64,000 nucleotides of DNA, from contig NW_026262674.1 of NCBI RefSeq assembly GCF_021869535.1, forward strand, positions 1,612,001 through 1,676,000. The letters are read 5' to 3'. Below, piece by piece: positions 2,540-60,843 of the stretch. The notes beneath the pieces were generated by a model. The model was not told the origin of the DNA and did not search any database. It was given only the letters and a program-made list of their open reading frames with translations. Both the position numbers and the translations under genes were made by a program. The DNA is from Mytilus californianus. Taxonomy: Eukaryota. Within the stretch, counting starts at the first letter, position 1. The number at the start of each line of letters is the position of its first letter.

Positions 2540-3188
2540 CTTTTTTAGTCCACTACCGACGAAGTCGAAGGGGACAGTGGGACTTTAGGTTGCACTCCGT
2601 CCGTCGGTCTGTCTGTCTTCAACATGCAGAAATTGATTCAGTGATGTTTGGTATATTGTTTTATCATGACAAGGTACATATCAAGTTCAAATATTGTTCC
2701 AGTTTGATGAGTTTGTGCAGAGTTATGGTCCTTTGACTTAAACAATTCACTAAAATAATCAGTTTTCTTCATTTTTTTGTGTCATTCTTGAAGATATTGA
2801 TTTGATAATTGGTGATTAGTTTTATCATGACATGTTACAGATCATGTTCGAATTTTGTTCCGGTCTGATGATTTTTGTGCAGAGTTATGGTCCTTGGACT
2901 TAGAAAATTCACTTAAATAATCAGTTTTTCGAACTTTTTTCGTCATGTTTAAAGACATTGATTTGAAAATTGGCATATAGTTTTATCATGAAAAGATACA
3001 GATAAAGTTCGAATTTTGTTGCGGTCAGTTTTCCACAATTTTGTTTTGTCATGCTTGAAGATATTGACTATTTGTGATAAAGTTTACATCATGACAAGTT
3101 ATAAATCAAGTTAGAATTTTGTTCCAATACAATAAATTAACCGTTTGGGGAATACGTATTGTCATGCAATACTCACAGAATGCTTGTT
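2540..3188 (+). mobile_element. HINE-like (Helentron-associated) element with ~162-bp internal units
   Basis: T-rich start, short hairpin, CCGT microsatellite, repeated GAGTTATGGTCC at 2721 and 2883, terminal GGGGAATACGTATTG...AATACTC hairpin. Confidence 0.65.
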
Positions 3189-3219
3189 AAAATTTAGTTT
3201 CATTCTTTATATTAGATGA

Positions 3220-3375
3220 GAGAGACGAAAGATACCGAATGGACATTTAAACTCATAAATCGAAGTAAACTGACAACGCCATGGCTAAAAAAGAAAAAGA
3301 CAGACAAACAATAGTACACAAGACACAACACAACATATTAAACTTAAGACTAAGATCACTAGGCAACACGAACAA
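3220..3375 (+). repeat. Abundant interspersed repeat fragment
   Basis: AAACTGACAACGCCATGG...AAGACTAAG...CAACACGAAC; a reverse-complement copy lies at ~29760-29910. Confidence 0.55.
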
Positions 3376-3917
3376 GAAAATGTTTTGACTAATGTGTAGT
3401 TTTATTTTATTCACTTAGTAAGGGATCAAGTTACCATTTAACTTCAAGGACAAAGGAGGGGTTATGTTTTTCGTCTGAGTCGGAAACTTTTTATTCCATG
3501 GAGAGCATGAATATTTTTGTTTTTCAACGCTATCAATCAAATTATTTTTTTCAATATTTAACACTTTAAATTGAGGAGAGAATCTGGATTCAGAACTTTT
3601 TTTGTCATCTGCATGACCACAATATATTTTTTTTAATTTGGGTTCAGAATATATTTTTTAGAAAAAAGACATAACCCCCTCTCTCTTAACATAACACATA
3701 AGTTCACATTGCTGATTAAGTTTCTTTGACGAATATATGTTATATGTAGTTGGATTTTATCAACTAAGTTATACTTAAATTTTATCATTTTTAGTTTGGC
3801 TGAATTATGTTTAAGAGTGGACAAGAAGGTGCATGGCATTAGAAAAGATTTTATCGTGAAAATTTAGCATTCTCCGTTACAATCTCTGTTATTCTAACCT
3901 GACTAGACAATTCTAAG

Positions 3918-6422
3918 ATGTTTCGCAGTGGTCATGGTGGACAGGAGTTGACGGGAAAAGATAGATTTTCAGAAACAAAAAATAAAGAGCTTTTAACTGT
4001 TATCTCCCCCGACCAACCAACAGAAAATTTAGAGACGTTCCACGGCAGACAGGACGAGACAGAAATAAATATGGTTTCTGATACTGAAATCTCCCCTGAA
4101 CAACCCACAGACAATTTAGAGACGTTCCACGGTGGGCAGGACAAGACAGACCCTGAACAACCAACAGACAATTTAGAGATGTTTCACGGCGGACAGAACA
4201 AGGCAGACCCTGACCAACCTACAGACAATTTAGAGATGATCCATGGTGGACAGGACAAGACAGAAACAAATATGGTTTCTGACACTCAAAATATACTAAC
4301 AGTCATCCCTCTTGATCAGACTAGTACAGACCAACTGATGGACAAGGCATATCAGACTAGGAAGAAGTTTGATGCTGGTAATGAATGGGGTAAAGAGTAC
4401 CAGGGAAGTGTGTATGGTAAAGAATGTCATGGTAATGTTTGTGCTAAAGAATGTCATGGTATTGGTTGTGGTAAAGAATGGCATGGTAATGTTTGTGGTA
4501 GAGAATGTCATGGTAATGAATGTGGTAAAGAACGTCGTGGTAATGTTTGTGGTAGAGAATGTCATGGTATTGGTTGTGGTAAAGAATGGCATGGTAAAGA
4601 GTACCAGGGAAGTGTGTATGGTAAAGAATGTCATGGTAATGTTTGTGGTAAAGAATGTCATGGTAATGTTTGTGGTAAAGAATGTCATGGTATTGGTTGT
4701 GGTAAAGAATGTCATGGTATTGGTTGTGGTAAAGAATGGCATGGTAATGTTTGTGGTAGAGAATGTCATGGTATTGGTTGTGGTAAAGAATGGCATAGTA
4801 AAGAGTACCAGGGAAGTATGTATGGTAAAGAATGTCATGGTAATGTTTGTGGTAAAGAATGTCATGGTATTGGTTGTGGTAAAGAATGGCATGGTAATGT
4901 TTGTGGTAGAGAATGTCATGGTAATGAATGTGGTAAAGAACGTCATGGTAATGAATGTGGTAAAGAATGTCATGGTATTGGTTGTGGTAAAGAGTACCAG
5001 GGTTGTGTGTATGGTAAAGAATGTCATGGTAATTTTTGTGGTAAAGAATGTCATGGTAGTTTTTGTGGTAAAGAATGTCATGGAAATGAATGTGGTAAAG
5101 AATGTCTTGGCAATGTTTGTGGTAAAGAATGTCACGGTAATTTTTGTGGTAAAGAATGTCACGGTAATTTTTGTGGTAAAGAATGTCATGGTAATGTTTG
5201 TGGTAAAGAATGTCATGGTAATGTTTGTGGTAAAGAATGTCATGGTAATGAGTGTGGTAAAGAATGTCATGGTAATGTTAGTGGTAAAGAATGTCATTGT
5301 ATTGGTTGTGGTAAAAAATGTCAAAGAAATATGTGTGGTAAAGTGTGCAAAAGTAATATTTTTGGTAAACAGTCGCAAAATTGTGTGTGTGGTAACGAGT
5401 ACCAAAGTAATTTGTGTGGTAAAGAGTTTCAAAGTAATTTGTGTGGTAAAGAGTTTCAAAGTATTTTGTGTGGTAAAGAGTTCCAAAGTAATGTGTGTGA
5501 TACAAATTACCCAAGTAATATATGTGGAAAAGATTTCAACGGTAAAGTGTGCATATGTAATATTTGTGGTAAAGAACGTCATGGTAATAATTGTGGTAAA
5601 GAGTGCAAAACTAGTGCATGTGGTAAACAGTGCCAAGAAAAGGCATTCAGCTTATGTAGTAAAGGATTTCATCAGACTCGGGTCTTAAAGAGTCGCATTA
5701 TAAAACATAAAGGCTATGAACCTTTTAAATGTGGAATGTGTGAAGTGGATTTCAGTAAGAATAAATACCTACAACAACACATGAGGATACATACTGTTGA
5801 TAAACCTTATAGATGTGAAGTTTGTGGTTCAGTATTTCGCATGTCACATCACTTACGGATACACACAAGAACACATACTGGTGATAAACCATTCAAATGT
5901 GATATATGTGATAAGGCATTTAGACAAAGTTCTCATGTGCTGACCCACAAGAAAACACATACAGGTGAAAAACCGTGTAAAATATGTAAATGTGATGTAT
6001 GTGAAAAGGAATTTAGTCAGCGTCCTGACTTAAACGGACACATGAGAACACATACGGGTGATAAACCTCATCAATGTGAGGTATGTGATAAAACTTTCAG
6101 TAGGAAGGAACACTTACGACTACACATGAAAATACATACTGGCGATCAACCGTTTGCATGTAATGTATGTGGTAGAGGTTTTAATTATAAAATCGACGTT
6201 CAAAGACACTCAAGAAGGCATTCTAAATGTGTTGAAAGACCTTATAAATGTAATATTTGTGATAAAGATTTTATTCGGAAACAGAACTTACAGAATCACA
6301 TGAGAATACATACAGGGGAAAACCCATATGAATGTGAAACCTGTGGTCAAACATTTAGTCTTTCAATTTTCTATGCTAGACATATGGCAAAGCATGGTGC
6401 TGAGAAGGACAAATTAGTTTAG
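3918..6422 (+). CDS. ZF-A: C2H2 zinc-finger protein with acidic 19-aa repeats, ~47 Cys/His 9-aa repeats and 8 C-terminal fingers
   Basis: 834-aa intact ORF; eight C-X2-C-X12-H-X3-H fingers with TGDKP-type linkers; polypyrimidine-AG acceptor at 3793-3794; in-frame TGA at 3900 precedes the ATG. Confidence 0.92.
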   Translation: MFRSGHGGQELTGKDRFSETKNKELLTVISPDQPTENLETFHGRQDETEINMVSDTEISPEQPTDNLETFHGGQDKTDPEQPTDNLEMFHGGQNKADPDQPTDNLEMIHGGQDKTETNMVSDTQNILTVIPLDQTSTDQLMDKAYQTRKKFDAGNEWGKEYQGSVYGKECHGNVCAKECHGIGCGKEWHGNVCGRECHGNECGKERRGNVCGRECHGIGCGKEWHGKEYQGSVYGKECHGNVCGKECHGNVCGKECHGIGCGKECHGIGCGKEWHGNVCGRECHGIGCGKEWHSKEYQGSMYGKECHGNVCGKECHGIGCGKEWHGNVCGRECHGNECGKERHGNECGKECHGIGCGKEYQGCVYGKECHGNFCGKECHGSFCGKECHGNECGKECLGNVCGKECHGNFCGKECHGNFCGKECHGNVCGKECHGNVCGKECHGNECGKECHGNVSGKECHCIGCGKKCQRNMCGKVCKSNIFGKQSQNCVCGNEYQSNLCGKEFQSNLCGKEFQSILCGKEFQSNVCDTNYPSNICGKDFNGKVCICNICGKERHGNNCGKECKTSACGKQCQEKAFSLCSKGFHQTRVLKSRIIKHKGYEPFKCGMCEVDFSKNKYLQQHMRIHTVDKPYRCEVCGSVFRMSHHLRIHTRTHTGDKPFKCDICDKAFRQSSHVLTHKKTHTGEKPCKICKCDVCEKEFSQRPDLNGHMRTHTGDKPHQCEVCDKTFSRKEHLRLHMKIHTGDQPFACNVCGRGFNYKIDVQRHSRRHSKCVERPYKCNICDKDFIRKQNLQNHMRIHTGENPYECETCGQTFSLSIFYARHMAKHGAEKDKLV
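4389..5640 (+). repeat. Coding 27-bp minisatellite (GKECHGNVC-type, ~47 units)
   Basis: Unit GGTAAAGAATGTCATGGTAATGTTTGT; higher-order blocks restart with GKEYQG at units 1, 9, 17 and 24; 3' units degenerate towards GKEFQSNLC. Confidence 0.95.
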
Positions 6423-6564
6423 TTCAAAATAAGCAAAATAAGGAATTCATATGGCTGACATTCTGACCTATATTTCTAAGGGATGAAACTCTAAACGAAT
6501 TGCCTTTTTGTATGACCATATCTTCATAAACGTTATATATTTGACAAATAGTGTTAAATAAATA

Positions 6565-6710
6565 GGGAACTATCATTTAACTTTAAAAAAATATTCTGAT
6601 TAATGTATTCGTCATTAAAATTAATGATAATTTCTTGTAAAAAAATATTAAAGCTTGTGTGGTCCGAAAAAAACCAAACCCTCGATGTCGAAGTTAAAAT
6701 GGTTGTTCCC
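6565..6710. mobile_element. Degenerate PIF/Harbinger-type MITE
   Basis: Imperfect TIR GGGAACTATCATTT / AAATGGTTGTTCCC, similar to the 8544-8769 MITE; TSD not conserved. Confidence 0.5.
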
Positions 6711-6869: not shown

Positions 6870-9260
6870 CAAACAGAAATTACCACTCAGAGACACAACA
6901 GAACATGTCCACACACCGAATTACAACTCGGAGACAGTATAAGATAGAGCACATACACACACCCGAATTACCACTCAGAGACACAGTATGATATAGAGCA
7001 CACTCTAATTACCACTCAGGGACACAGTATTATATAGAGCACACTCGAAATTACCTCTCAGAGACACAGTAAGATATAGAACACACTCGAATTACCATTC
7101 AGAGACACAGTAAGATATAGAACACACTCGAATTACCATTCAGAGACACAGTAAGATATAGAACACACTAGAATTACCATTCAGAGACACAGTTTCATAC
7201 TGAGTACATCAACACACCCTAATTATCACTGTAGAACATAGTATGGTATAGAGTACACACAAACACACACACAACCTAATTACCAATCAGAGACACAGTA
7301 TTATATAGCATGTATAGAGCACACTCGAATTATCACTCGGAGACATAGAATGATATATATAGCACTCTCGAATTACCACTTAGAGACACAGTATGATATA
7401 GAGCACACTCGAATTACCACTCGGAGACACAGTATGATATAGAGCACACTCGAATTACCACTCAAAGACATAGTATGATATAGAGCACACTCGTATTACC
7501 ACTCGGAGACACATTATGATATAGAGCACTCTCGAATTACCTCTCAAAGACACAGTATGATATAGAGCACACTCGAATCACCACTCGGAGACATCGTATG
7601 ATATATAGCACACTCGAATTACCATTCAGAGACACAGTAAGATTTAGAACACACTCGAAATACCATTCAGAGACACAATAAGATATAGAACACACTCGAA
7701 ATACCATTCAGAGACACAGTAAGATATAGAACACACTCGAAATACCATTCAGAGACACAGTAAGATATAGAACACACTCGAATTACCATTCAGAGACACA
7801 GTAAGATATAGAACACACTCGAATTACCATTCAGAGACACAGTAAGATATAGAACACACTCGAATTACCATAGCACACTCGAATTACCATTCAGAGACAC
7901 AGTAAGATATAGAACACACTCGAATTACCATTCAGAGACACAGTAAGATATAGAACACACTCGAATTACCATTCAGAGACACAGTAAGATATAGAACACA
8001 CTCGAATTACCATTCAGAGACACAGTAAGATATATAGCACACTCGAATTACCATTCAGAGACACAGTAAGATATAGAACACACTCGAATTACCATTCAGA
8101 GACACAGTAAGATATAGAACACACTCGAATTACCATTCAGAGACACAGTAAGATATAGAGCACACTCGAATTACCATTCAGAGACACAGTAAGATATAGA
8201 ACACACTCGAATTACCATTCAGAGACACAGTAAGATATAGAACACACTCGAATTACCATTCAGAGACACAGTAAGATAAAGAACACACTCGAATTACCAT
8301 TCAGAGACACAGTAAGATAAAGAACACACTCGAATTACCATTCAGAGACACAGTAAGATATAGAACACACTCGAATTACCATTCAGAGACACAGTAAGAT
8401 ATAGAACACACTCGAATTACCATTCAGAGACACAGTTTCATACTGAGTACATAAACACACCCGAATTACCACTGGGAAACACAGTATGGTATAGAGCACA
8501 CACACACACAACCGAATTACCATTCAGAGACACAGTATGATAAGGGAGCTACCATTTGATTTTTAGGGGGGGGGGGGGCTAGGATGAAATTCGAAAAAAA
8601 GGCAGGACAGGAGTTTTGAGTACAAAATAAGGCAGGATGAGCAACTTTGCAAAAAAAAAGGCAGGATGACAATTTATGTAAAAGAAAGTCAGGATAAACT
8701 AATAAAAAAAAAAGCCAAGACCGAATACCCCCCCCCCCCCTCCCCCCTAAAATTCAAATGGTAGCTCCCTAAAGAGCACATACATTCAAACGAATCAACA
8801 ATGTACCACACAGTGACACAGTATTATAAAGAGCACATACACACAACCGAATTACCACCCAAATACACAGTTTAATATACTATACACACTGCACACACCC
8901 GAATTACCACTCGAAGACACAGTATAATATAGAACACATACATACAACAAAGTTACCACTCGGAGACAGTTTTATATGGAGCACATATACACAATCGAAT
9001 TACCACTCGGAGACACAGTATGATAGAGAACACATGCACACGAACGAATAACCACTTACAGACACAGTAGAATAAAAAGCACATACGCACACCCGAATTA
9101 CCACTCAGACCGTGCAAGGGCTGTACAAAATGTATAACCAGTCAAGGTCGTTAAAACTTCCATCGTTTCGAATTACCACTCAGAGACACAGTATGATAAA
9201 GACCATATACGCAGCACCAAATTACCATTCGGTGACGCAGTATAATTTAGAACACATACA
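6870..9260. repeat. 41-bp tandem satellite
   Basis: Unit CACACTCGAATTACCATTCAGAGACACAGTAAGATATAGAA (period 41, e.g. 7881 to 7922); homogeneous core ~7040-8430 with degenerate flanks. Confidence 0.95.
8544..8769. mobile_element. PIF/Harbinger (Tourist-like) MITE inserted in the satellite
   Basis: TIR GGGAGCTACCATTT / AAATGGTAGCTCCC with TAA target duplication (8541-8543, 8770-8772); removing it restores a satellite unit. Confidence 0.85.
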
Positions 9261-16994: not shown

Positions 16995-18833
16995 ATGACG
17001 GGCAACAAAAATACAGCGAATTCTATGAATGTATCTCTTGGTCAAAACACAGGTCACTTTTCAAAGGAAGACACGAGACTCACTGCTGATTGTACTGGTC
17101 ATGTGTGTAGTAAAGGATTGGAAAAAGAAGAAATGTTCGAGAATATTTGTCAAGTGTGTGATAAAGGGTTGAAAAGTGTTGAAAAGTCCGAAACTTTTCA
17201 AGTGTGTGGTAATAGATTGAAAAGTTACGAAAAATCCGACACTACTTGTCAAGTGCGTGTTAAAAGATCTAGAGCGGTAGATAAGTCCGAAGAACATATA
17301 ACAATTCGATCTGGCAATAAAACGTTTAAATGTGACATATACAATAAAGGAAATAATAAAACACTTATCATACAGTCGCATACTCAAAAACGAACTCAGT
17401 CTGATGATAAACGTTTTAACTGTGATGTATGTACTAAAAGTTTTAGTCTTGAACAGCACTTAAAGTCACACATGCGTATACACAATGATGATAAACCTTT
17501 TAATTGTGACGTGTGTGGGAAAGCGTTTAAACGACCCAGTCAATTAAACTCTCACATGATTATGCACAATGATGATAAACCTTTTAACTGTGACGTATGT
17601 AGGAAAGCGTTCAAACGATCTAGTCAACTAAATTCACACATGCGTATACACAATGATGACAAACCTTATAATTGCGGGGTATGTGGTAAAGATTTTAATC
17701 ACCGACAAAATTTACAAAGACATATGAGTATACACATTGGTGATAAACCTTTTAACTGTGATGTATGTGGTAAAGGATTTAGTCATAAACAGATCTTAAA
17801 CTCACACATGCGTATACACAATGATGAGAAACCTTTTAATTGTGACGTGTGTAGGAAAGCGTTTAAACGATCTAGTCAATTAAGTTCACACATGCGTTTA
17901 CACAATGATGATAAACCTTATAATTGTGATGTATGTGGTAAAGGGTTTCATCAACCTAGTCAATTAAAGACACACATGAGAACACACACTGGTGATAAAC
18001 CTTATACCTGTGATGTATGTGGTAAAGGATTTGCTGAAAGTGGTAGCTTACGGCCACACATGAGAACACACACTGGTGATAAACCTTATACCTGTGATGT
18101 ATGTAGTAAATGTTTTAGTTATAAGCAGCACTTAAAGTCACACATGCGTATACACACTGGAGAAAAACCTTTTAAATGTGACGTATGCGATAGAAGGTTT
18201 CGTCAAAATAGTGTCTTAAAGACACACACTAGAACTCATACTGGTGTCAAACCATATATATGTGATGTATGTAATAAAGGATTTAGTCGACGTGATACCT
18301 TAAATGGACATATGAGAACACATACGTTTGAAACACCTAAAAAATGTAAAGTATGTGATGAAGTATTTCGACAACGACAAGATTTACTAATACACATGGG
18401 AACGCATACTGACGAAAACCCCTATACATGCAAAATATGTGGTAAATCTTTCAGTTACAAATGCCATTTAAAGGTACACACGAGAATACACACGGGTGAT
18501 AAACCTTTTAACTGTGATGTATGCAGTAAACTGTTTAGCCAACGATCAAAACTACGTATGCATATGAAAATACACACTGGTGAAAAACATAATTTTAAGT
18601 GTGGTGTATGCGGCAGAAGATTCCGTAAAACTAGTGATTTAAAGAATCACACGACAACACATACTGGTGAAAAACCGTATTTGTGTGATGTGTGTGGTAA
18701 AGGATTTAGTCGGATTGATACCTTGCAGGAACATATGAGAACACATACAGGTGAACAACCTTATAGATGTGATGTATGTGAAACCAAATTTCGTCATAGG
18801 CAAGACTTACGGATGCATATGAGAACGCATTGA
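16995..18833 (+). CDS. ZF-C: C2H2 zinc-finger protein, 17 fingers
   Basis: Open frame from the acceptor at 16943-16944; first ATG at 16995; 17 canonical fingers, five early linkers HNDDKP/HNDEKP. Confidence 0.9.
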   Translation: MTGNKNTANSMNVSLGQNTGHFSKEDTRLTADCTGHVCSKGLEKEEMFENICQVCDKGLKSVEKSETFQVCGNRLKSYEKSDTTCQVRVKRSRAVDKSEEHITIRSGNKTFKCDIYNKGNNKTLIIQSHTQKRTQSDDKRFNCDVCTKSFSLEQHLKSHMRIHNDDKPFNCDVCGKAFKRPSQLNSHMIMHNDDKPFNCDVCRKAFKRSSQLNSHMRIHNDDKPYNCGVCGKDFNHRQNLQRHMSIHIGDKPFNCDVCGKGFSHKQILNSHMRIHNDEKPFNCDVCRKAFKRSSQLSSHMRLHNDDKPYNCDVCGKGFHQPSQLKTHMRTHTGDKPYTCDVCGKGFAESGSLRPHMRTHTGDKPYTCDVCSKCFSYKQHLKSHMRIHTGEKPFKCDVCDRRFRQNSVLKTHTRTHTGVKPYICDVCNKGFSRRDTLNGHMRTHTFETPKKCKVCDEVFRQRQDLLIHMGTHTDENPYTCKICGKSFSYKCHLKVHTRIHTGDKPFNCDVCSKLFSQRSKLRMHMKIHTGEKHNFKCGVCGRRFRKTSDLKNHTTTHTGEKPYLCDVCGKGFSRIDTLQEHMRTHTGEQPYRCDVCETKFRHRQDLRMHMRTH

Positions 18834-31816: not shown

Positions 31817-33775
31817 TTACTTTGATTTAAGTAATTTGGCCTTTTCTGCATTATGTTTTGTCACATGTGTAGTATAAGAAATTGAAAGGCTAAATGTTAG
31901 ACCACATATCTCGCACAAATATGGTCTCTCACCAGAATGTGTTCTCATGTGCACTTTTAAGTTTGATATCCGAATAAAATCTTTATCACACATATCACAT
32001 TTATAGGGTCTTCCACCACGTTCATCATGTCTAAAATGCCTTTGTTTGTGTCTTTGCACGTCTTTTTTACAAGTAAAACCTCTACCACAAATATCACATG
32101 CAAACGGTTTATCGCCAGTATGTATTCTCATGTGAGTTGGTAAGTATTCCTTCCTACTGAAAGCCTGATCACACACCCCACATTGATAAGGTTTATCACC
32201 AGAATGTGTTCTCATGTGTCTGTTTAACTCTGAACTTTGACTAAATTCCTTTTCACATACATCACATTTACAAACTTTACTCGGTTTTTCACCCGTATGT
32301 GCTCTCCTGTGTCTCCGCATGTGATGGGACTGACTAAATGTCTTATCACATATATCACATGTGAATGGTTCAGCACCAGTATGTGTATTCATATGTCTCC
32401 GTAAGTGATGATGCCGACTATACTTATTATCACATATATCACATTGATATGGTTTAGCACCAGTATGTGTCCTCATGTGCATATCTAGGTGTTCCTTCCT
32501 ACCGAAATCTACGTTACACACTCCACATTTGTAAGGTTTGTAGCCTTTCTGTTTTATAATACGAGTCTTTAAGACCCGAGTCTGACGACATTCTTTATTA
32601 CATGACTTACACGCCTTTCCTTGGCACTGTTTACCACATGTTCTAGTTTTGCACTCATTACCACAAACATTACCATGACATTCTTTACCACAAACATTAC
32701 CATGACATTCTTTACCACAATCATTACCCTGGTACTCTTTATCACATTCACTACCAACATCAACCTTCTCTTTAGTCTGATATGCCTCGTCCATCAGTTG
32801 GTCTGAACTGGTCTGATCAAGAGGAATGAATGTTATTTTATCTTTCTTTTCAGTATCAGAAACCATATTTGTTTCTGTCTTGTCCTGTCCACCCTGGAAC
32901 ATCTCTAGATTGTCTGAAGGTTGTTCAGGGGAGATTTCAGTAACAGAAACCATATGTGTTTCTGTCTTGTCCTGTCCGTCGTGTAACATCTCTAAAATGT
33001 CTGTAGGTTGGTCAGGGGAGATAACTGTTAAAATCTCTTTATTTTCCGTATCTGAAAATCCATCTGTTCCTGTCCTCTCCTGTCCACCATGACCATTGTG
33101 TAACATGTGATGAGACTGGCTAAATGCCTTATTACTTATATCACATGTGAATGGTTCAGCACCAGTATGTGTATTCATATGTCTCCGTAAGTGATGATGC
33201 CGGCTATACTTATTATCACATATATCACATTGATATGGATTAACACCAGTATGTGTCCTCATGTGCATTTCTAGGTGTTCCTTCCTACCGAAATCTACTT
33301 TACACACTCCACATTTGTAAGGTTTGTAGCCTTTTTGTTTTATAATACGAGTCTTTAAGACCCGAGTCTGACGACATTCTTTATTACATGACTTACACGC
33401 CTTTCCTTGGCACTGTTTACCACATATTCTTGTTTTGCACTCATTACCACAAACATTACTATGACATTCTTTACCAGAAACATGACCATGACATTCTTTA
33501 CCACAATCATTACCCTGGTACTCTTTATCACATCCATTACCAACATCAACCTTCTCTTTAGTCTGATATGCCTCGTCCATCAGTTGGTCTGAACTGGTCT
33601 GATCAAGAGGAATGAATGTTAGTTTATCTTTCTTTTCAGTATCAGAAACCATATTTGTTTCTGTCTTGTCCTGTCCGCCCTGGAACATCTCTTGATTGTC
33701 TGAAGGTTGTTCAGGGGAGATTTCAGTAACAGAAACCATATGTGTTTCTGTCTTGTCCTGTCCGCCGTGTAACAT
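31817..33775 (-). CDS. ZF-B: inverted paralog of ZF-A with a ~790-bp internal tandem duplication; 2 + 8 intact fingers
   Basis: 652-aa ORF; last 8 fingers align one-to-one with ZF-A; ancestral ATG at 33899 is put out of frame by a 50-bp deletion, so the start is uncertain; acceptor at 34051-34052 homologous to ZF-A. Confidence 0.8.
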   Translation of the reverse strand: MLHGGQDKTETHMVSVTEISPEQPSDNQEMFQGGQDKTETNMVSDTEKKDKLTFIPLDQTSSDQLMDEAYQTKEKVDVGNGCDKEYQGNDCGKECHGHVSGKECHSNVCGNECKTRICGKQCQGKACKSCNKECRQTRVLKTRIIKQKGYKPYKCGVCKVDFGRKEHLEMHMRTHTGVNPYQCDICDNKYSRHHHLRRHMNTHTGAEPFTCDISNKAFSQSHHMLHNGHGGQERTGTDGFSDTENKEILTVISPDQPTDILEMLHDGQDKTETHMVSVTEISPEQPSDNLEMFQGGQDKTETNMVSDTEKKDKITFIPLDQTSSDQLMDEAYQTKEKVDVGSECDKEYQGNDCGKECHGNVCGKECHGNVCGNECKTRTCGKQCQGKACKSCNKECRQTRVLKTRIIKQKGYKPYKCGVCNVDFGRKEHLDMHMRTHTGAKPYQCDICDNKYSRHHHLRRHMNTHTGAEPFTCDICDKTFSQSHHMRRHRRAHTGEKPSKVCKCDVCEKEFSQSSELNRHMRTHSGDKPYQCGVCDQAFSRKEYLPTHMRIHTGDKPFACDICGRGFTCKKDVQRHKQRHFRHDERGGRPYKCDMCDKDFIRISNLKVHMRTHSGERPYLCEICGLTFSLSISYTTHVTKHNAEKAKLLKSK

Positions 33776-40590: not shown

Positions 40591-41500
40591 CTTCCGACGG
40601 GTTTGAATACATGTATGATGTTTTATTTTAATGGAAAATCCGTACAGACCCAGAAACGTGTGACCCAAAAGGGTTCACGAGCTTTATCGTCATTGTTAAA
40701 CTCAGTCAAAGATTTGTACTTGTCAAAGAAGAAACAACTTGGTCTATTTGACAGTATGATGGCGTCTGTTCTGAATTCTGCTTCGAAAATATGGGGTTTA
40801 AATCGAGGTAAAGATGTTGGGATTATTCACAATCGTTTCTGTCGATATATTTTAAAAGTTGAAAAAACTGTTCCAAATTGTTATTTATATGGAGAATTTG
40901 GCCATTTTCCTATGTATATTATGAGAAAATTTAGAATTTTGAAATACTGGTTGAATATTCTAACTAACAAAACACCTTTTGTTTATGATGTTTATGATGT
41001 TTATGATGTTTATGATGTTTATAAATTGTTACTTGAAGATGCCAATAATGGCAAAAGAAACTGGGCTTCTTATGTACGTGACTTATTATTTGATTGTGGT
41101 CTAAATTATATATGGTATCAACAATCATATTATTGATGTAATTAAGAATAGAATTAAAGATCAGTATATAAAAAGCTGGTTATCATCTGTAGAAATGAGC
41201 GAAAAACTTAGTATTTATAAGAATATAAAGTTAGAATTTAGGTTTGAACATTATGTAAATTGCTGTTATAATTCACACTTTTTAACTAAATTACGTAGTG
41301 GTGCACTAAAGCTGAACATTGAAACAGGAAGATATACTGACATGGCTAGAGAATTACGTGTATGTAAATGTTGTAATATGCAGTGCGTTTAAAAAACGAG
41401 TACCACTTTTTGTTAGTATGCCCTGCCTATAGATCAATTATGCCTAAATATTTGCTAAAATTCTACTGTTCTTGGCCAAACATTACTAAATTACAGTAGT
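40590..41500 (+). mobile_element. 5'-truncated non-LTR retrotransposon ORF2 3' fragment
   Basis: LFDSM..LN.ASKIWG, YGEFGHFP, LKYW, IETGRY..RVCKCC..NEYHFLLVCP CCHC knuckle, with stops. Confidence 0.8.
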
Positions 41501-45229: not shown

Positions 45230-47300
45230 AAGAAGATGTGGTATGATTGCCAATGAGACAACTCCCCACAAGAGACCAAATGACACAGAAATTAACAACT
45301 ATAGGTCACCGTACGGCCTTCAACAATGAGCAAAGCCCATACCACACAGTCAGCTAAAAAAGGCCCCGAAATGACAATGTAAAACAATTCAAACGAGAAA
45401 ACTAACGGCCTTATTTATGTACAAAAAATGAACGAAAAACAAATATGTAACACATAAACAAACGACAACCACTGAATTACAGGCTCCTGACTTGGGACAG
45501 GCACATATATACAGAATGTGGCGGGGTTGAACATGTTAGCGGGATCCCAACACTCCCCCTAACCTGGGATAGTGGTGTAACAGTACAACATAAGAACGAA
45601 CTATAAAAATCAGTTGAAAGAGGCTTAACTCATCAGATGGATAAAAATACAAATACTACAAATACAAGTGGACGTGGCCGGGTACTTGTACATCCAAACA
45701 ACAAAAAGACACTAAGTACAGATCTGAGAGTACTCGCAGTTACTGACAGCTAGTTCAAAGCCACTAACAACTAATAAAAAAAATCATGCATCTAAGACTA
45801 AATTATCAATCCATACACATCCAACATCCAATGGATTTAGGGTAAAGACGTCATGAACAGTCAGAGAAAAACGTGACTTTGTGCAATGCCAAGATACAGG
45901 TATCGACAGATTGTAGATCCATGAATGTGTATATGTATATAACAATAATATCTAGTTTGCTTTTAATTTACTGATAACAAAATCAATATCAGTACCAATA
46001 AAAACAATATTAATTGATCTAATTACAGTGTTGAATTGGTAACCTTTTAGAATAAGTTTATTTAAAGGATCGATAAGTTTATCAGGATCATTTCTAAATT
46101 TCCCGGCACGGTAAACAATATTGCCGTAAAAATGAGGATGTGCAATCCCGTTTGAAATAAGTTTTCTACAGGTACAACCAAACTTCAAGACCAAATCTTT
46201 ATATCTGTGGAAGAATTTAGTAAAGGTTTTAAGTAATTTGTGGTAACGAAATCCCTGGCTTAATAATTTACCAGTAATACATAGATTACGTTCGTTAAAA
46301 TAAAAAACGTCACAACAGACACTGGCAGAGCGAACGAGTTGTGAAATATAAACACCGTAAGATGGTGCCAAAGGAACATCACCATCCAAAAAGGGAAAAT
46401 TAACAATAGGGAACAAAATATCGTCCCTTTTGTCGTACATTTTAGTGTGGAGTTTCCCGTGTAAAACCGAAATATCTAAATCTAGGAAAGGACAGTTGTT
46501 ATTGTTTAAATTTGATTTATTTAAAGTAAGTTCCTTTGGGTGAATTTCGGCAGTATATTGAGAAAATTCTTGATTATTTAACGAAAAAATGTCATCAAGA
46601 TAACGGTAAGTGTTGTTGAATTTATCAATTAAATGCGAATTAGACGTGTCTTTACTGAGTTTGGTCATAAACTATGATTCATAACAGTACAAAAACAAGT
46701 CTGCTATTAAAGGGGCGCAATTAGTGCCCATAGGAATACCTACAACCTGTCGACAAACTTTGCTGCCGAAACGTACATAAATATTATCATGGAGAAAATT
46801 AACAGCTTCAATCATCTCATCACACCTCCAGTAAGTATGTCTAGCATATTTACCTTTCTCATTAAAGAAGAAGGCTTTAAATGAGTTGCAGCGAATATAT
46901 TTGCATTCAGATTTACCAAACGAACATTTAATTAAATAGTCAAATTTTTGTTTAATAAGATTGTGTGGAAGTGTAGTGATAAGAGTAGAAAAGTCAAAAC
47001 TGTCAACAGAATCAAAAGGACCATCAAAAGCACGTAATTTATCTAAAACATCCAAAGATTTTTTTACACTCCAAAAATAGTTAATTCCACTATTTTCATA
47101 TATTTTATAGTTTATGATAAGCTCTTTGATAGTAGTTAAGGAACTTGTTAAAAACACTGAAAGATTAGTTGTAGAACACTTACTAGAGGCCGAGATGAAA
47201 CGATATTATACTGGTTTTTTGTGTAGTTTAGGTAACCAATACATAGTAGGAACCTTCAAATGTTCAGAAGAAGCCTTAAGCTGTGATATGGTTATGATAT
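45230..47300 (-). mobile_element. 5'-truncated Penelope-like retroelement (Naiad/Chlamys-type RT), inactivated
   Basis: YWLPKLHK, DSFDFSTL, GIPMGTNCAPLIADLFLYCYE and YRYLDD motifs; in-frame TAG at 46672-46674; no GIY-YIG after RT; 3' region 45230-45950 recurs as many dispersed fragments. Confidence 0.8.
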
Positions 47301-47440: not shown

Positions 47441-48187
47441 TGTCACCAAACTATTCACCACATACAACACATGTGCAAGGTTTTCACTAGTATAAGTTCT
47501 CATGTGTCTATCATAGTGTCTGGTGTCACCAAACTATTCACCACATACAACACATGTACGAGGTTTTCACTAGTATAAGTTCTCATGTGTCTATCATTGT
47601 GTCTGGTTTCACTAAACTGTTTACCACATACAACACATGTGCGAGGTTTTCACTAGTATAAGTTCTCATGTGTCTATCATAGTGTCTGGTGTCACTAAAC
47701 TATTCACCACATACAACACATGTGCGAGGCTTTCACTAGTATAAGTTCTCATGTGTCTATCATAGTGTCTGGTGTCACTAAACTGTTTACCACATACAAC
47801 ACATGTGCGAGGTTTTCACTAGTATAAGTTCTCATGTGTCTATTATAGTGTCTGGTGTCACCAAACTATTCACCACATACAACACATGTACGAGGTTTTC
47901 ACTAGTATAAGTTCTCATGTGTCTATCATAGTGTCTGGTGTCACTAAACTGTTAACCACATACATCACATGTGCGAGGTTTTCACTAGTATAAGTTCTCA
48001 TGTGTCTATCATAGTGTCTGGTGTCACTAAACTGTTAACCACATACATCACATGTGCGAGGTTTTCACTAGTATAAGTTCGCATGTGTCTATCATAGTGT
48101 CTGGTGTCACTAAACTGTTAACCACATACATCACATGTGCGAGGTTTTCACCAGTATGAGTTCTCATGTGTCTATCATAGTGTCTTG
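47441..48187 (-). repeat. 83-bp minisatellite derived from a frameshifted C2H2 finger (9 units)
   Basis: Unit starts at 47441, 47524, 47607, 47690, 47773, 47856, 47939, 48022 and 48105; the minus strand reads finger-like C..VCG..F.D.RHYDRHMRTYTSE with one base missing in the linker. Confidence 0.93.
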
Positions 48188-48193
48188 TGTCAA

Positions 48194-49732
48194 TTAACTG
48201 TTTACCACATACATAGCATTGGTAAGATATTCACCAGCATGAGTCAGTTTCATGTGTAAAAGACAGGTACTATTGAGGCTAAACTTTTTCCCACAAACAT
48301 TACATTTGTAAAGTCCATCATGTGTTACAGTATTACGAGTACAGCTTTGAGTTCTCATGTGTCTATGGACGCTGCTCTTGTCCCTAAACCCTTTACCACA
48401 GACATCACATGTGTAAGGTTTTTCATCAATATGAGTTCTCATGTGTATATGAAGGGATCTGTTGCTCCTAAAACCTTTACCACATACAGCGCATGTGTAA
48501 GGTTTTTCACCTGTATGTAATCTAATGTGTGTGATTAATTCCTGATTTGACTTAAACCCTTTACCACATACATCACAAATGTAAGGTTTGTATTGCTCTC
48601 CAGTATGAGTTCTCATGTGTTCAAGACAAGAACTGGTGTTGCCAAACTCTTTATCACACACATCGCATTTGTAAAGTTTATCTCCAGTATGAGTTCTCAT
48701 GTGTCTCAGACAAGAACTGTTGTTGCCAAACTCTTTAATACACACATCGCATTTGTAAAGTGTATTACAAGTATGAATGTTCGTGTGTCTATCAAAGTTA
48801 CCTTTGTAGTTTAATCCTTTATCACATGCTTGTCTGTTATATGGGTTTTCACCAGTATGAGTTTTCATGTGTCTATTATAGGAACTGATGTCACTAAACC
48901 CTTTACCACATACGTCACATTTGTAAAATTCGTCACCAGTATGAGTTCTCATTTGTTTGTGAAAATAACTGTTGTTGTCAAACTCTTTACCACATACATC
49001 ACACGTGTAACGTTTATGATATTTATAACCAGTATGAATTCTCAAGTGTTTATTGCAGTCACTTTTTCTGCCGAACTTTTTACCACAGACATCACATGTG
49101 TAAGGTTTTTCACCGGTATGCATTCTTGTGTGTGCCGTTAAGGAACTGCAGTCATTAAACCCTTTACCACATACATCACATGTGTAAGGCTTTCCACCAG
49201 TATGAGTTCTTGTATGTTTCTTATATGATTTATAGTAACCAAACCCTTTACCACATAAATCACATGTGTAGGGTTTTTCACGCGTATCACCTGTGTGAAT
49301 TCTCATGTGTCTGAGAAAGTTACTTTTGTGACTAAACCCTTGACCACATAAATCACATGTTGTGCAACGTTTTTCATCAGTATGATTTCTTTTATGTTTC
49401 GTACAGTTTCTGGAGTTAGTAAACCCTTGACCACATACATCACATGTGTAACGCTTTTTACCAGTATGAGTTCGTGTGTGTTTCGTTAAGGTTCCAGAGA
49501 ACCTAAAACTTTTATCACACATACCACATTTGTAAGGTTTATCCTGTTTATCAACATTATGAATACTCATGTGTTTAAGGAAGCCTCTTTTGTCACTAAA
49601 TCCCTTAACACATACATCACATATGTAAGGTTTGTCAGCAGTATGAGTTCTTGTGTGTATCGTATGCGATCTGAAGTCACTAAACCTTTTACCACATACA
49701 TCACATATGTATGTTTTTTCACCCGAATCCAT
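48194..49732 (-). CDS. ZF-D: C2H2 protein with 17 finger units (14 intact); N-terminus disrupted, possible pseudogene
   Basis: 512-aa ORF. Upstream acceptor at 50176-50177 and ATG at 50117 read MQNT...NVSLE, then frameshift and stops. Ends by frameshift at the last linker. Confidence 0.7.
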   Translation of the reverse strand: MDSGEKTYICDVCGKRFSDFRSHTIHTRTHTADKPYICDVCVKGFSDKRGFLKHMSIHNVDKQDKPYKCGMCDKSFRFSGTLTKHTRTHTGKKRYTCDVCGQGFTNSRNCTKHKRNHTDEKRCTTCDLCGQGFSHKSNFLRHMRIHTGDTREKPYTCDLCGKGFGYYKSYKKHTRTHTGGKPYTCDVCGKGFNDCSSLTAHTRMHTGEKPYTCDVCGKKFGRKSDCNKHLRIHTGYKYHKRYTCDVCGKEFDNNSYFHKQMRTHTGDEFYKCDVCGKGFSDISSYNRHMKTHTGENPYNRQACDKGLNYKGNFDRHTNIHTCNTLYKCDVCIKEFGNNSSCLRHMRTHTGDKLYKCDVCDKEFGNTSSCLEHMRTHTGEQYKPYICDVCGKGFKSNQELITHIRLHTGEKPYTCAVCGKGFRSNRSLHIHMRTHIDEKPYTCDVCGKGFRDKSSVHRHMRTQSCTRNTVTHDGLYKCNVCGKKFSLNSTCLLHMKLTHAGEYLTNAMYVVNS

Positions 49733-59502: not shown

Positions 59503-60843
59503 ATGAAAAGTGAAGACGTCTGCACAGAAACAAATGAAATATCTTGCAACGGAACATCAGCTACTTCTGTGATTGTCTCCCTTGATCGGACTTCCGGTCC
59601 ATTAATGGAGGATCGCTTAGTTAGATGTCATGGCATAGGAATTAGTTATATATGTAAAGTGTGTGGTAAGGAGTGTAATAGCAATGCAGATCTAGAGGAA
59701 CATAAAATAACTCATACCGAAGAACAAGCTTTCAAATGTAAAAAGTGTAATAAAGAGTTTCGTGCATATAGTGTGCTACAGATGCATTTAAAGACACACG
59801 CTAGGTGTTATATATGTGATAAATGCGGTATAGGTTTTCGTAAGGATGATGACTTAAAGACACACTTGAAAAGTCACTCTGAAGATAAACCTAATGTTTT
59901 TACGTGTGATGTATGTGAAAAAGGGTTTAGTCAATATAGGTATCTACAGACCCACATGAGAACACATACTGGAGATAACCCTTATAAATGTGATGTATGT
60001 GGTAGAAGATTTGCTTGTAGTAATTACAAGCAAAATCATATGAGAACACATACTGGTGAAAAACCATATGTATGTGATGTATGTGGAAAAAGTTGTAGCC
60101 AGCTTAGTAGTATACAGAGGCACATGAGAACACATACAGGTGATAAATCTTATAAATGTGATGTATGTGGTAAAGGGTTTACTAACAAATGCTGCTTGAA
60201 GAGACACACAAAAACACACACTGGTGAAAGACCTTTCAAATGTGAAATATGTGGTAATGGGTTTATTCGGAATTGTGACTTACAAAAACACATGAGAATA
60301 CATACTGGCGAAAAACCGTATAATTGTGATGTATGTGGTAAAGGGTTTACTACCAAATGGTACCTGAAGAACCACACAGCAACACACACTGGTGAAAGAC
60401 CTTTCAAATGTGATGTATGTAATAATGGGTTTAGAAAAAATTGCGATATAATTAGACATATGAGAATACATTCTGGTCACGACGATAAACTGTATAAATG
60501 TGATTTATGTGAGAAAAGGTATAGTAAGAAACAGCATTTAACAACTCACATGAGAACACATACTGGTGATAAACCGTATAAATGTGATGTATGTGGGAGA
60601 AGGTTTACTACCAGTTCGTGCCTGAAGAGACACACAACAACACACACTGGTGAAAGACCTTTCAACTGTGATATATGTGGTAAAGGTTTCATTCAGAATT
60701 GCGACTTACAGAAACACATGAGAATACATACTGGTGATAAACCGTATAAATGTGATGTATGTGGTAAAGGATTTAGTCAAAAAGGTCACTTACAAACACA
60801 CATGAGATTACATACTGGTGATAAACCTTTTAAATGTGATTAA
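59503..60843 (+). CDS. ZF-E: C2H2 zinc-finger protein, 14 fingers
   Basis: Acceptor TTTTTGTCAG at 59481-59482, ATG at 59503; 14 fingers; stop falls inside a 15th finger, and decayed fingers follow to ~61100. Confidence 0.9.
   Translation: MKSEDVCTETNEISCNGTSATSVIVSLDRTSGPLMEDRLVRCHGIGISYICKVCGKECNSNADLEEHKITHTEEQAFKCKKCNKEFRAYSVLQMHLKTHARCYICDKCGIGFRKDDDLKTHLKSHSEDKPNVFTCDVCEKGFSQYRYLQTHMRTHTGDNPYKCDVCGRRFACSNYKQNHMRTHTGEKPYVCDVCGKSCSQLSSIQRHMRTHTGDKSYKCDVCGKGFTNKCCLKRHTKTHTGERPFKCEICGNGFIRNCDLQKHMRIHTGEKPYNCDVCGKGFTTKWYLKNHTATHTGERPFKCDVCNNGFRKNCDIIRHMRIHSGHDDKLYKCDLCEKRYSKKQHLTTHMRTHTGDKPYKCDVCGRRFTTSSCLKRHTTTHTGERPFNCDICGKGFIQNCDLQKHMRIHTGDKPYKCDVCGKGFSQKGHLQTHMRLHTGDKPFKCD

Follow-up and report, generated by a model that had tools for sequence, protein, structure and literature searches.

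A probable young 27-bp coding minisatellite ahead of the finger domain of a Mytilus C2H2 zinc-finger gene

We analysed a 64,000-nt stretch of the Mytilus californianus genome (contig NW_026262674.1, positions 1,612,001 to 1,676,000 of assembly GCF_021869535.1; hereafter the window). It is free of N stretches and comprises a cluster of mussel C2H2 zinc-finger genes, in which five large finger open reading frames (ORFs) and many tandem repeats are found. One of these genes, ZF-A, carries a long in-frame array of 9-amino-acid (aa) units ahead of its eight fingers. We consider this array to be a young, tolerated coding minisatellite that gives rise to a disordered Cys/His/Gly-rich segment, and put the probability of this reading at roughly 0.6. 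That is, the gene would provide a clean, dated case in which a zinc-finger fragment turned into a coding minisatellite and lengthened an expressed transcription factor by several hundred Cys/His-rich residues, all within the divergence of closely related mussel species.

Anatomy of the array and its gene

We inspected the frames upstream of the ZF-A start codon at 3918 and found in-frame stops ahead of it, so that the whole coding sequence lies within one exon. The respective features, all on the plus strand of the window, are:

3918-6422, plus: ZF-A coding sequence, 834 aa plus stop (from the ORF list)
4094-4264, plus: 57-bp (19-aa) coding repeat in the N-terminal region of ZF-A, 3 copies of PEQPTDNLEMFHGGQDKTD type (Tandem Repeats Finder)
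4389-4592, 4593-4796 and 4797-4985, plus: three higher-order array blocks (unit table and block alignment)
4986-5309, plus: a fourth head unit, then 11 core units of young age (GKECHGNFC, GNVC, GNEC and CIGC variants)
5310-5567, plus: ten diverged units (GKKCQRNMC and GKEFQSNLC type, one partial GKDFN)
5568-5648, plus: three ancestral tail units (GKERHGNNC, GKECKTSAC, GKQCQEKAF; from alignments)
5649-5717, plus: degenerate 'finger 0' (SLCSKGFHQTRVLKSRIIKHKGY), aa 578-600 (local finger hidden Markov model, 8.6 bits)
5724-6395, plus: 8 canonical C2H2 fingers, aa 603-826 (read from the translation)

By our segmentation, the array covers aa 158-577 (nt 4389-5648; 420 aa) and comprises 9-aa units in 45 full copies, plus 3 partial ones of 5 aa, with the consensus GKECHGNVC. 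The original prediction of about 47 such units with C-x4-C-x3-C spacing, in frame before 8 fingers, is thus borne out. Tandem Repeats Finder reports the 27-bp period across 4376-5537, plus two short rows reaching 5646. The consensus 27-mer is present six times unchanged, and the whole window shows 34 matches to it at up to 3 mismatches (vs. 0 expected). Among the 420 residues are 71 Cys (16.9%), 30 His (7.1%), 86 Gly and 25 aromatic ones, i.e., Cys plus His make up 24%. Column conservation over the 45 full units is highest for G1 (42), K2 (39), E3 (39) and C9 (38), followed by G6 (33), C4 (29), H5 (28) and N7 (28).

The array is organized hierarchically. Every one of the three higher-order blocks opens with the Cys-less head unit GKEYQGSVY, which occurs 4 times in the array, and blocks 1 and 2 terminate in the partial unit GKEWH. 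Blocks 1 and 3 show few differences in about 189 positions; overall, the array blocks are about 97% alike. Many or most of the ten diverged units are without Cys4 and His5, and none of them is present in M. coruscus. The three tail units are common to ZF-A, ZF-B (a paralogue in the window) and the Mytilus relatives.

These properties are those of a coding minisatellite, i.e., a repeat in a coding exon with a unit of 10-100 bp that is a multiple of 3: the unit measures 27 bp, the partial copies 15 bp, all of them are in frame, copy number varies between related loci and species, and there are signs of unequal exchange. The microhomology GGTAA is found at offsets 0 and 15 of the 27-bp unit. The partial units are in frame because their joints fall at this motif, which recurs 15 bp apart. 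Furthermore, the unit is without stop in three frames and 3/6 frames are open across the array. An open frame therefore proves nothing on selection, and we rejected it as a sign thereof.

Downstream of the array, finger 0 keeps a finger-like register but has lost zinc ligands. Its VLKSRIIKxKGY part is largely conserved across family members, with L, K, R, I, I, K, K, G and Y invariant. The 8 C-terminal fingers satisfy the C2H2 definition with all ligands intact in this genome, and Pfam's C2H2 families match the C-terminal part of ZF-A only, i.e., these 8 fingers.

For the array itself (4389-5648), Pfam yields no family even at E<=10, metallothionein, NF-X1 and DnaJ included, and a sequence search of the PDB gives no match. 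To this extent, the claim that the array is not a described domain holds. The same applies to the claim that its units are unable to be C2H2 fingers (PF00096; C-x2-4-C-x12-H-x3-5-H, hairpin plus helix), since the H-x3-H half is missing. The DnaJ Cys-rich pattern (four C-x2-C-x-G-x-G, two zinc sites) differs from the array spacing C-x3-C-x-G. Metallothioneins are small proteins that bind several d10 metal ions in thiolate clusters, have a Cys content of roughly 30%, show C-x-C, C-C and C-x-x-C motifs and are poor in aromatics and His. The array, in contrast, is 17% Cys, lacks all three motifs (its Cys spacings are C-x3-C and C-x4-C only), has aromatics and His in common use and shows no sequence match to them. 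A Cys density near that of metallothionein, as had been stated, is thus overstated; it is about half.

Structure prediction offers no confident fold for the array. The exact ZF-A protein is present in the ESM Atlas, where its model has a mean predicted local distance difference test score (pLDDT) of 0.54. AlphaFold2 assigns a pLDDT of 41.7 to 287 aa of the array in single-sequence mode. For the short ancestral module (6-row alignment), it remains below 50 in the Cys-rich part vs. 86-89 in the adjacent true finger. The array segment is accordingly predicted to be unstructured. Language-model features of the array resemble those of zinc-finger families with a score of 0.94, where 146/256 features are shared. 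Matches within one family usually share at least 170, i.e., considerably more.

Relatives of ZF-A and growth of the array

Leaving out the array core, ZF-A aligns end to end with its paralogue ZF-B (31817-33775, minus strand). ZF-B is one 652-aa ORF with an in-frame 786-bp tandem duplication, in which the first copy (N-terminus, 5-unit Cys array, 3 fingers) reads directly into a complete second copy. Both copies hold an array:

33395-33529, minus: 5-unit array of ZF-B copy 1, a short version of the ZF-A array
32609-32743, minus: 5-unit array of ZF-B copy 2, whose units 2 and 3 (32663-32716) equal the ZF-A consensus 27-mer

The true relatives found by a HMMER search of ZF-A aa 1-600 against 1.84 billion representative proteins are confined to Mytilus coruscus, M. 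edulis and M. galloprovincialis, and their gene models are short or fragmentary throughout. The array is thus lineage-specific, as had been proposed. Respective numbers of core units are:

ZF-A of the window (this gene): 45 full plus 3 partial (about 47)
L001 of M. coruscus (orthologous locus): 13
L003 of M. coruscus (a further orthologous locus): 9
ZF-B of the window (paralogue): 5 per copy
Gene model P0008 at L003 of M. coruscus (paralogue, ZF-B-like): 2-3
M. edulis L002 (paralogue): 1

When compared across species, repeat number therefore differs considerably, i.e., we observe 1, 2, 3, 5, 9, 13 and 47 units among the Mytilus family members. Over window 2724-6544, L001 and L003 of M. coruscus both show 88-89% identity. 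They may represent haplotigs or duplicates. The synonymous divergence (dS) between ZF-A and M. coruscus is 0.09-0.19. Given that the array blocks are about 97% alike, most of the array growth postdates the split from M. coruscus. The growth route in ZF-A is the duplication of blocks of about 190-204 bp.

Expansion within this gene is not restricted to the array, which supports the reading as a tolerated minisatellite: other coding repeats of the same gene expand in other lineages. The M. coruscus orthologues hold a 36-bp coding repeat (TSTDQLMDKAYQ) in 7 copies (L001:6286-6539) and 4 copies (L003:6709-8124), which is single copy in the window's ZF-A. Vice versa, the 57-bp expansion (3 copies) of the window's ZF-A is absent from the M. 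coruscus orthologue.

Regarding the origin of the unit, the original prediction had placed its birth at a finger junction and named the junction in ZF-E, from which a 7-aa deletion would produce the unit. The general part stands up in so far as the unit does resemble a finger knuckle. When the 61 fingers of the window are combined into a profile, NVCGKEC aligns with DVCGKGF unit after unit (profile positions 4-10), and the degenerate finger immediately behind the array is recognised as well. To view the array unit as a finger knuckle thus seems reasonable, where the per-unit profile scores are too small to prove descent. The cited strings are all present as well, namely five units per ZF-B copy along with

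59626-59676, plus: CHGIGISYICKVCGKEC in ZF-E, a knuckle motif similar to the array unit, not its source
17091-17117: CTGHVCSKG in ZF-C

ZF-E as the specific source, on the other hand, is rejected. ZF-B and the M. coruscus orthologues, with which ZF-A is collinear, already carry the 27-nt unit in short arrays, i.e., the unit predates the ZF-A expansion. Two point changes lead from the ancestral GNV to the GIG variant, and the likeness of ZF-E to ZF-A is limited to the finger region.

Taken together, a plausible course of events would start in a C2H2 family that evolves fast and is restricted to Mytilus, with a 27-bp knuckle-like motif (xKECHGNVC) closely preceding a degenerate finger. In the genome studied here, unequal exchange or replication slippage may then have amplified the motif from a few copies to the present 45 full and 3 partial ones, largely via duplication of the blocks of about 190-204 bp. 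The survival of the reading frame would be mechanical, resulting from the 27-bp unit, GGTAA joints 15 bp apart and the lack of stops in three frames.

Sequence likeness beyond Mytilus was found to be of a different kind. The array has 862 phmmer matches with E-values down to 1e-51, which we rejected as homologues since they have the 9-aa period in common, not ancestry. Most of these matches are proteins of the P0001, P0003, P0005 and P0006 type with dozens of G-x-x-C-x-x-N-T-F repeats. Like the array, these metagenomic proteins show a 9-residue period with Gly at position 1, Cys or an aromatic residue at position 4 and Asn at position 7. They are large, probably viral or bacterial (ENA), belong to no Pfam family among those scanned and are 30-35% identical to the array. 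Most likely, the likeness is convergent and one of pattern only. The repeats of these proteins may form a Cys-containing beta-solenoid. Among the other convergent matches is P0007 (Haliotis rufescens XP_048252723), which has about 60 internal YDTSVGKKV nonapeptides and ends that are cytochrome P450-like by eye; here, too, the gene model of a mollusc contains a large coding repeat of 27 bp. A word-index protein search with residues 140-600 gave a single match, again a convergent repeat protein. Literature searches on mussel zinc-finger (ZNF) gene repeat expansions and Cys-rich nonapeptide repeats gave nothing specific.

Expression, assembly and substitution pattern

ZF-A is transcribed. The stranded RNA run X21, of which about 6% of the reads were sampled, covers 3761-6518 (to 6568 with second-study contigs), and its sole mate orientation corresponds to RNA of the plus strand. 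Most bins, among them the unique diverged units at 5337-5730, have a depth of about 1-6 (range 0.12-6.6), and the depth is zero in the unique DNA flanking ZF-A. The RNA check that had been suggested for the predicted array is hence positive: stranded reads extend across the ORF including unique array parts. Contigs from the second study (X14) lie on 4335-4448, 4827-4923, 5621-5778 and 6042-6568, and no joint that skips the array is found among the joints listed. Given this transcription, the protein probably has a segment of about 420 aa, rich in Gly, Cys, Lys, Glu and His, ahead of its 8 fingers.

We also considered whether the array length might be an assembly artefact, i.e., a collapsed or inflated repeat. 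Near-identical 27-bp units over 1.26 kb are beyond the reach of short-read contigs, and the depth of X21 drops to 0.12 in 4943-5139, which may reflect sampling noise or a different allele. Nevertheless, an artefact is very improbable. Each of eight same-species runs from three studies holds 51-77% of the sampled words of 3700-6600, DNA contigs are found on every array bin (one of them matches 5221-5428 without a difference), and the array is internally ordered with distinguishable variants and blocks rather than a uniform smear. Contigs of a sibling species (X15) match by about 97% at both array ends and in the fingers. The material for these comparisons comprises short-read contigs and 150-nt reads.

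To describe the substitution pattern, we used the 31 young core units. They show about 17 variant types, of which about 3 are synonymous and about 13-14 non-synonymous, where 5/27 sites of the unit are synonymous. As far as so few variants can tell, this fits a neutral ratio with no sign of selection on the array. Codons for Cys are changed in proportion to other codons (C>W in five units, C>R twice, C>S once), and Cys-replacing changes have been propagated through block duplication. Within the ZF-A lineage, ancestral cysteines were lost in the head unit and in finger 0.

Outside the array, we compared ZF-A with M. coruscus based on the ratio of non-synonymous to synonymous substitution rates (dN/dS). 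It amounts to 0.51 over 266 codons (5622-6419: fingers, finger 0 and last array unit) and to 0.50 for the N-terminus. These values indicate a gene that is relaxed but not neutral. For the 50-codon module that flanks the array, a small sample, dN/dS is about 1 in the ZF-A lineage.

Some of these observations weigh against a merely tolerated array. The neutrality test on about 17 variant types has little power, the array being too young. Fingers and N-terminus evolve at a dN/dS of about 0.5 and not 1, so the gene is constrained now or has been recently, and a 420-aa insertion that is kept in a constrained and expressed gene could have a role. In addition, ZF-A (4416-5228, plus strand), ZF-B copy 2 (32663-32716, minus strand) and M. 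coruscus have exactly the same consensus 27-mer, down to its synonymous sites, while the flanks are 80-87% alike. This identity could stem from gene conversion or from constraint on the unit. Finally, G1, K2, E3 and C9 are retained in 38-42 of the 45 units.

Competing readings, known analogies and neighbouring repeats

Two further readings of the array have to be weighed. In the first, close to the original prediction, the array would be under selection as a metal-binding or metal/redox-sensing module of tunable length, whose metal occupancy tunes folding, multimerisation or activity of the 8-finger domain. This is possible, but unlikely. It can be pictured as a chain of Cys2His-type ligand sets with putatively up to about 25 tetrahedral sites from the 71 Cys and 30 His. 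The regular C-x4-C-x3-C spacing, the adjacent His in 28/45 units and the 24% Cys plus His would suit such a chain, but replacements of Cys by Trp, Arg, Ser, Tyr or Phe are frequent and propagated, the ten diverged units are mostly without Cys4 and His5, and the head unit and finger 0 of ZF-A have lost ancestral Cys. Likewise, a consensus unit that is nucleotide-identical across paralogues and species has to be set against a unit number that ranges from 1 to 47 among kin. The array is in frame with intact fingers, transcribed and part of a gene with a dN/dS of about 0.5; one DNA run nevertheless carries a truncating allele. The zinc-finger-like language-model features (0.94) point towards a metal module, even though the 146/256 shared ones stay below 170, and they are opposed by the failure to obtain a confident fold next to a confident true finger as well as by the absence of any metallothionein, NF-X1, DnaJ or other Pfam match at E<=10. 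Cys clusters as in MTF-1 and Ace1 provide general precedent. A more far-reaching version is that finger-knuckle amplification would have created a functional, variable-length polynuclear zinc (or Cd/Cu) thiolate-imidazole domain of an undescribed type, which would make the transcription factor a metal/redox sensor or buffer. We regard this as quite improbable.

Alternatively, ZF-A might be a decaying or dispensable copy with runaway repeat growth in its array and residual transcription, which we consider improbable. In run X1, a DNA contig has C4 instead of C5 at 4006-4010 (1-bp deletion, depth 22.4 of 22.4), which would introduce a stop after 37 aa of ZF-A. This deletion is, however, absent from the RNA individual (0/8 reads), and in the genome studied here the 834-aa frame as well as all ligands of the 8 fingers are intact. 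The M. coruscus loci show separate frame breaks (a 2-bp deletion at the array end in L001, finger 7 in L003) and one lost finger Cys. These breaks may be assembly indel errors, since three neighbouring genes are broken too. Among the differences listed, 8/8 coding ones in the RNA run and 11/12 scored ones in the sibling-species run change the amino acid, but the list comprises the best-supported differences. Similarly, the dN/dS of about 1 for the 50-codon module beside the array contrasts with 0.5, i.e., below neutrality, over the 266 codons.

For a tolerated coding minisatellite, adventitious binding of Zn(II) or another soft metal by the roughly 100 thiol and imidazole groups of the segment would still be conceivable. 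If the segment binds metal, it would represent a metal-binding polymer whose length varies naturally and that is joined to a DNA-binding domain, a case of relevance to mussel metal biology. If it binds none, the array would be a record of the low-complexity insertion load tolerated by a clustered ZNF gene. The case also cautions against taking open frames in such repeats as proof of function.

Among known systems, the closest evolutionary analogy is the zinc-finger array of PRDM9, itself a coding minisatellite (PMC3890296), with a finger fragment as the unit in ZF-A. Both genes show an in-frame tandem repeat in a large exon of a C2H2 gene and a fast turnover of copy number and content among species and paralogues via unequal exchange. 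The PRDM9 unit, however, is a whole 84-bp DNA-binding finger with positive selection at its contact residues. The ZF-A unit is a 27-bp knuckle-like fragment without the HxxxH half; it precedes the real fingers, and signs of selection are not seen for it. Clustered ZNF genes with degenerate or partial fingers provide a further comparison. The ZF-A array likewise abuts a degenerate finger with lost ligands, and ZF-C also has knuckle-like remnants ahead of its fingers. Such remnants are normally single relics, such that an approximately 47-fold amplification of a 9-aa fragment is unusual.

In functional terms, a metal-thiolate cluster region is the closest analogy. Metal-responsive transcription factors such as MTF-1 and Ace1/Amt1 combine a Cys cluster with a DNA-binding domain. 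Like these clusters and the metallothioneins, the array is Cys-rich, would have low secondary structure without metal and might in principle offer metal-thiolate sites. A resemblance is also seen to the NF-X1 motif, whose substring C-x3-C-H-x-G-x-C is similar to C-G-K-E-C-H-G-N-V-C of the array. In contrast to NF-X1, the array unit is half as long and misses further ligands, and the repeats of NF-X1 are folded domains that have diverged rather than near-identical copies. Its NF-X1-type repeated Cys-His domain (Pfam PF01422) makes NFX1 an example of a DNA-binding protein with a repeated Cys/His motif (PMC2191754); as reported above, the respective profile does not match the array at E<=10.

Further repeats are found in the neighbourhood of the finger genes. 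Immediately downstream of ZF-A, a 41-bp satellite (also with 82- and 123-bp periods) spans 6957-8501, and M. coruscus has a related 47-bp repeat at the matching position (L001:8227-8337). ORFs of 238, 161 and 177 aa between the finger genes, at 45952-47157 (minus strand) and 40603-41136 (plus strand), resemble retroelement remnants when inspected by eye. A tandem repeat of 83 bp (9.3 copies, 94% match) at 47441-48213 adjoins ZF-D (48194-49732, minus strand) and is a finger-derived minisatellite with a period one base below the 84 bp of a finger.

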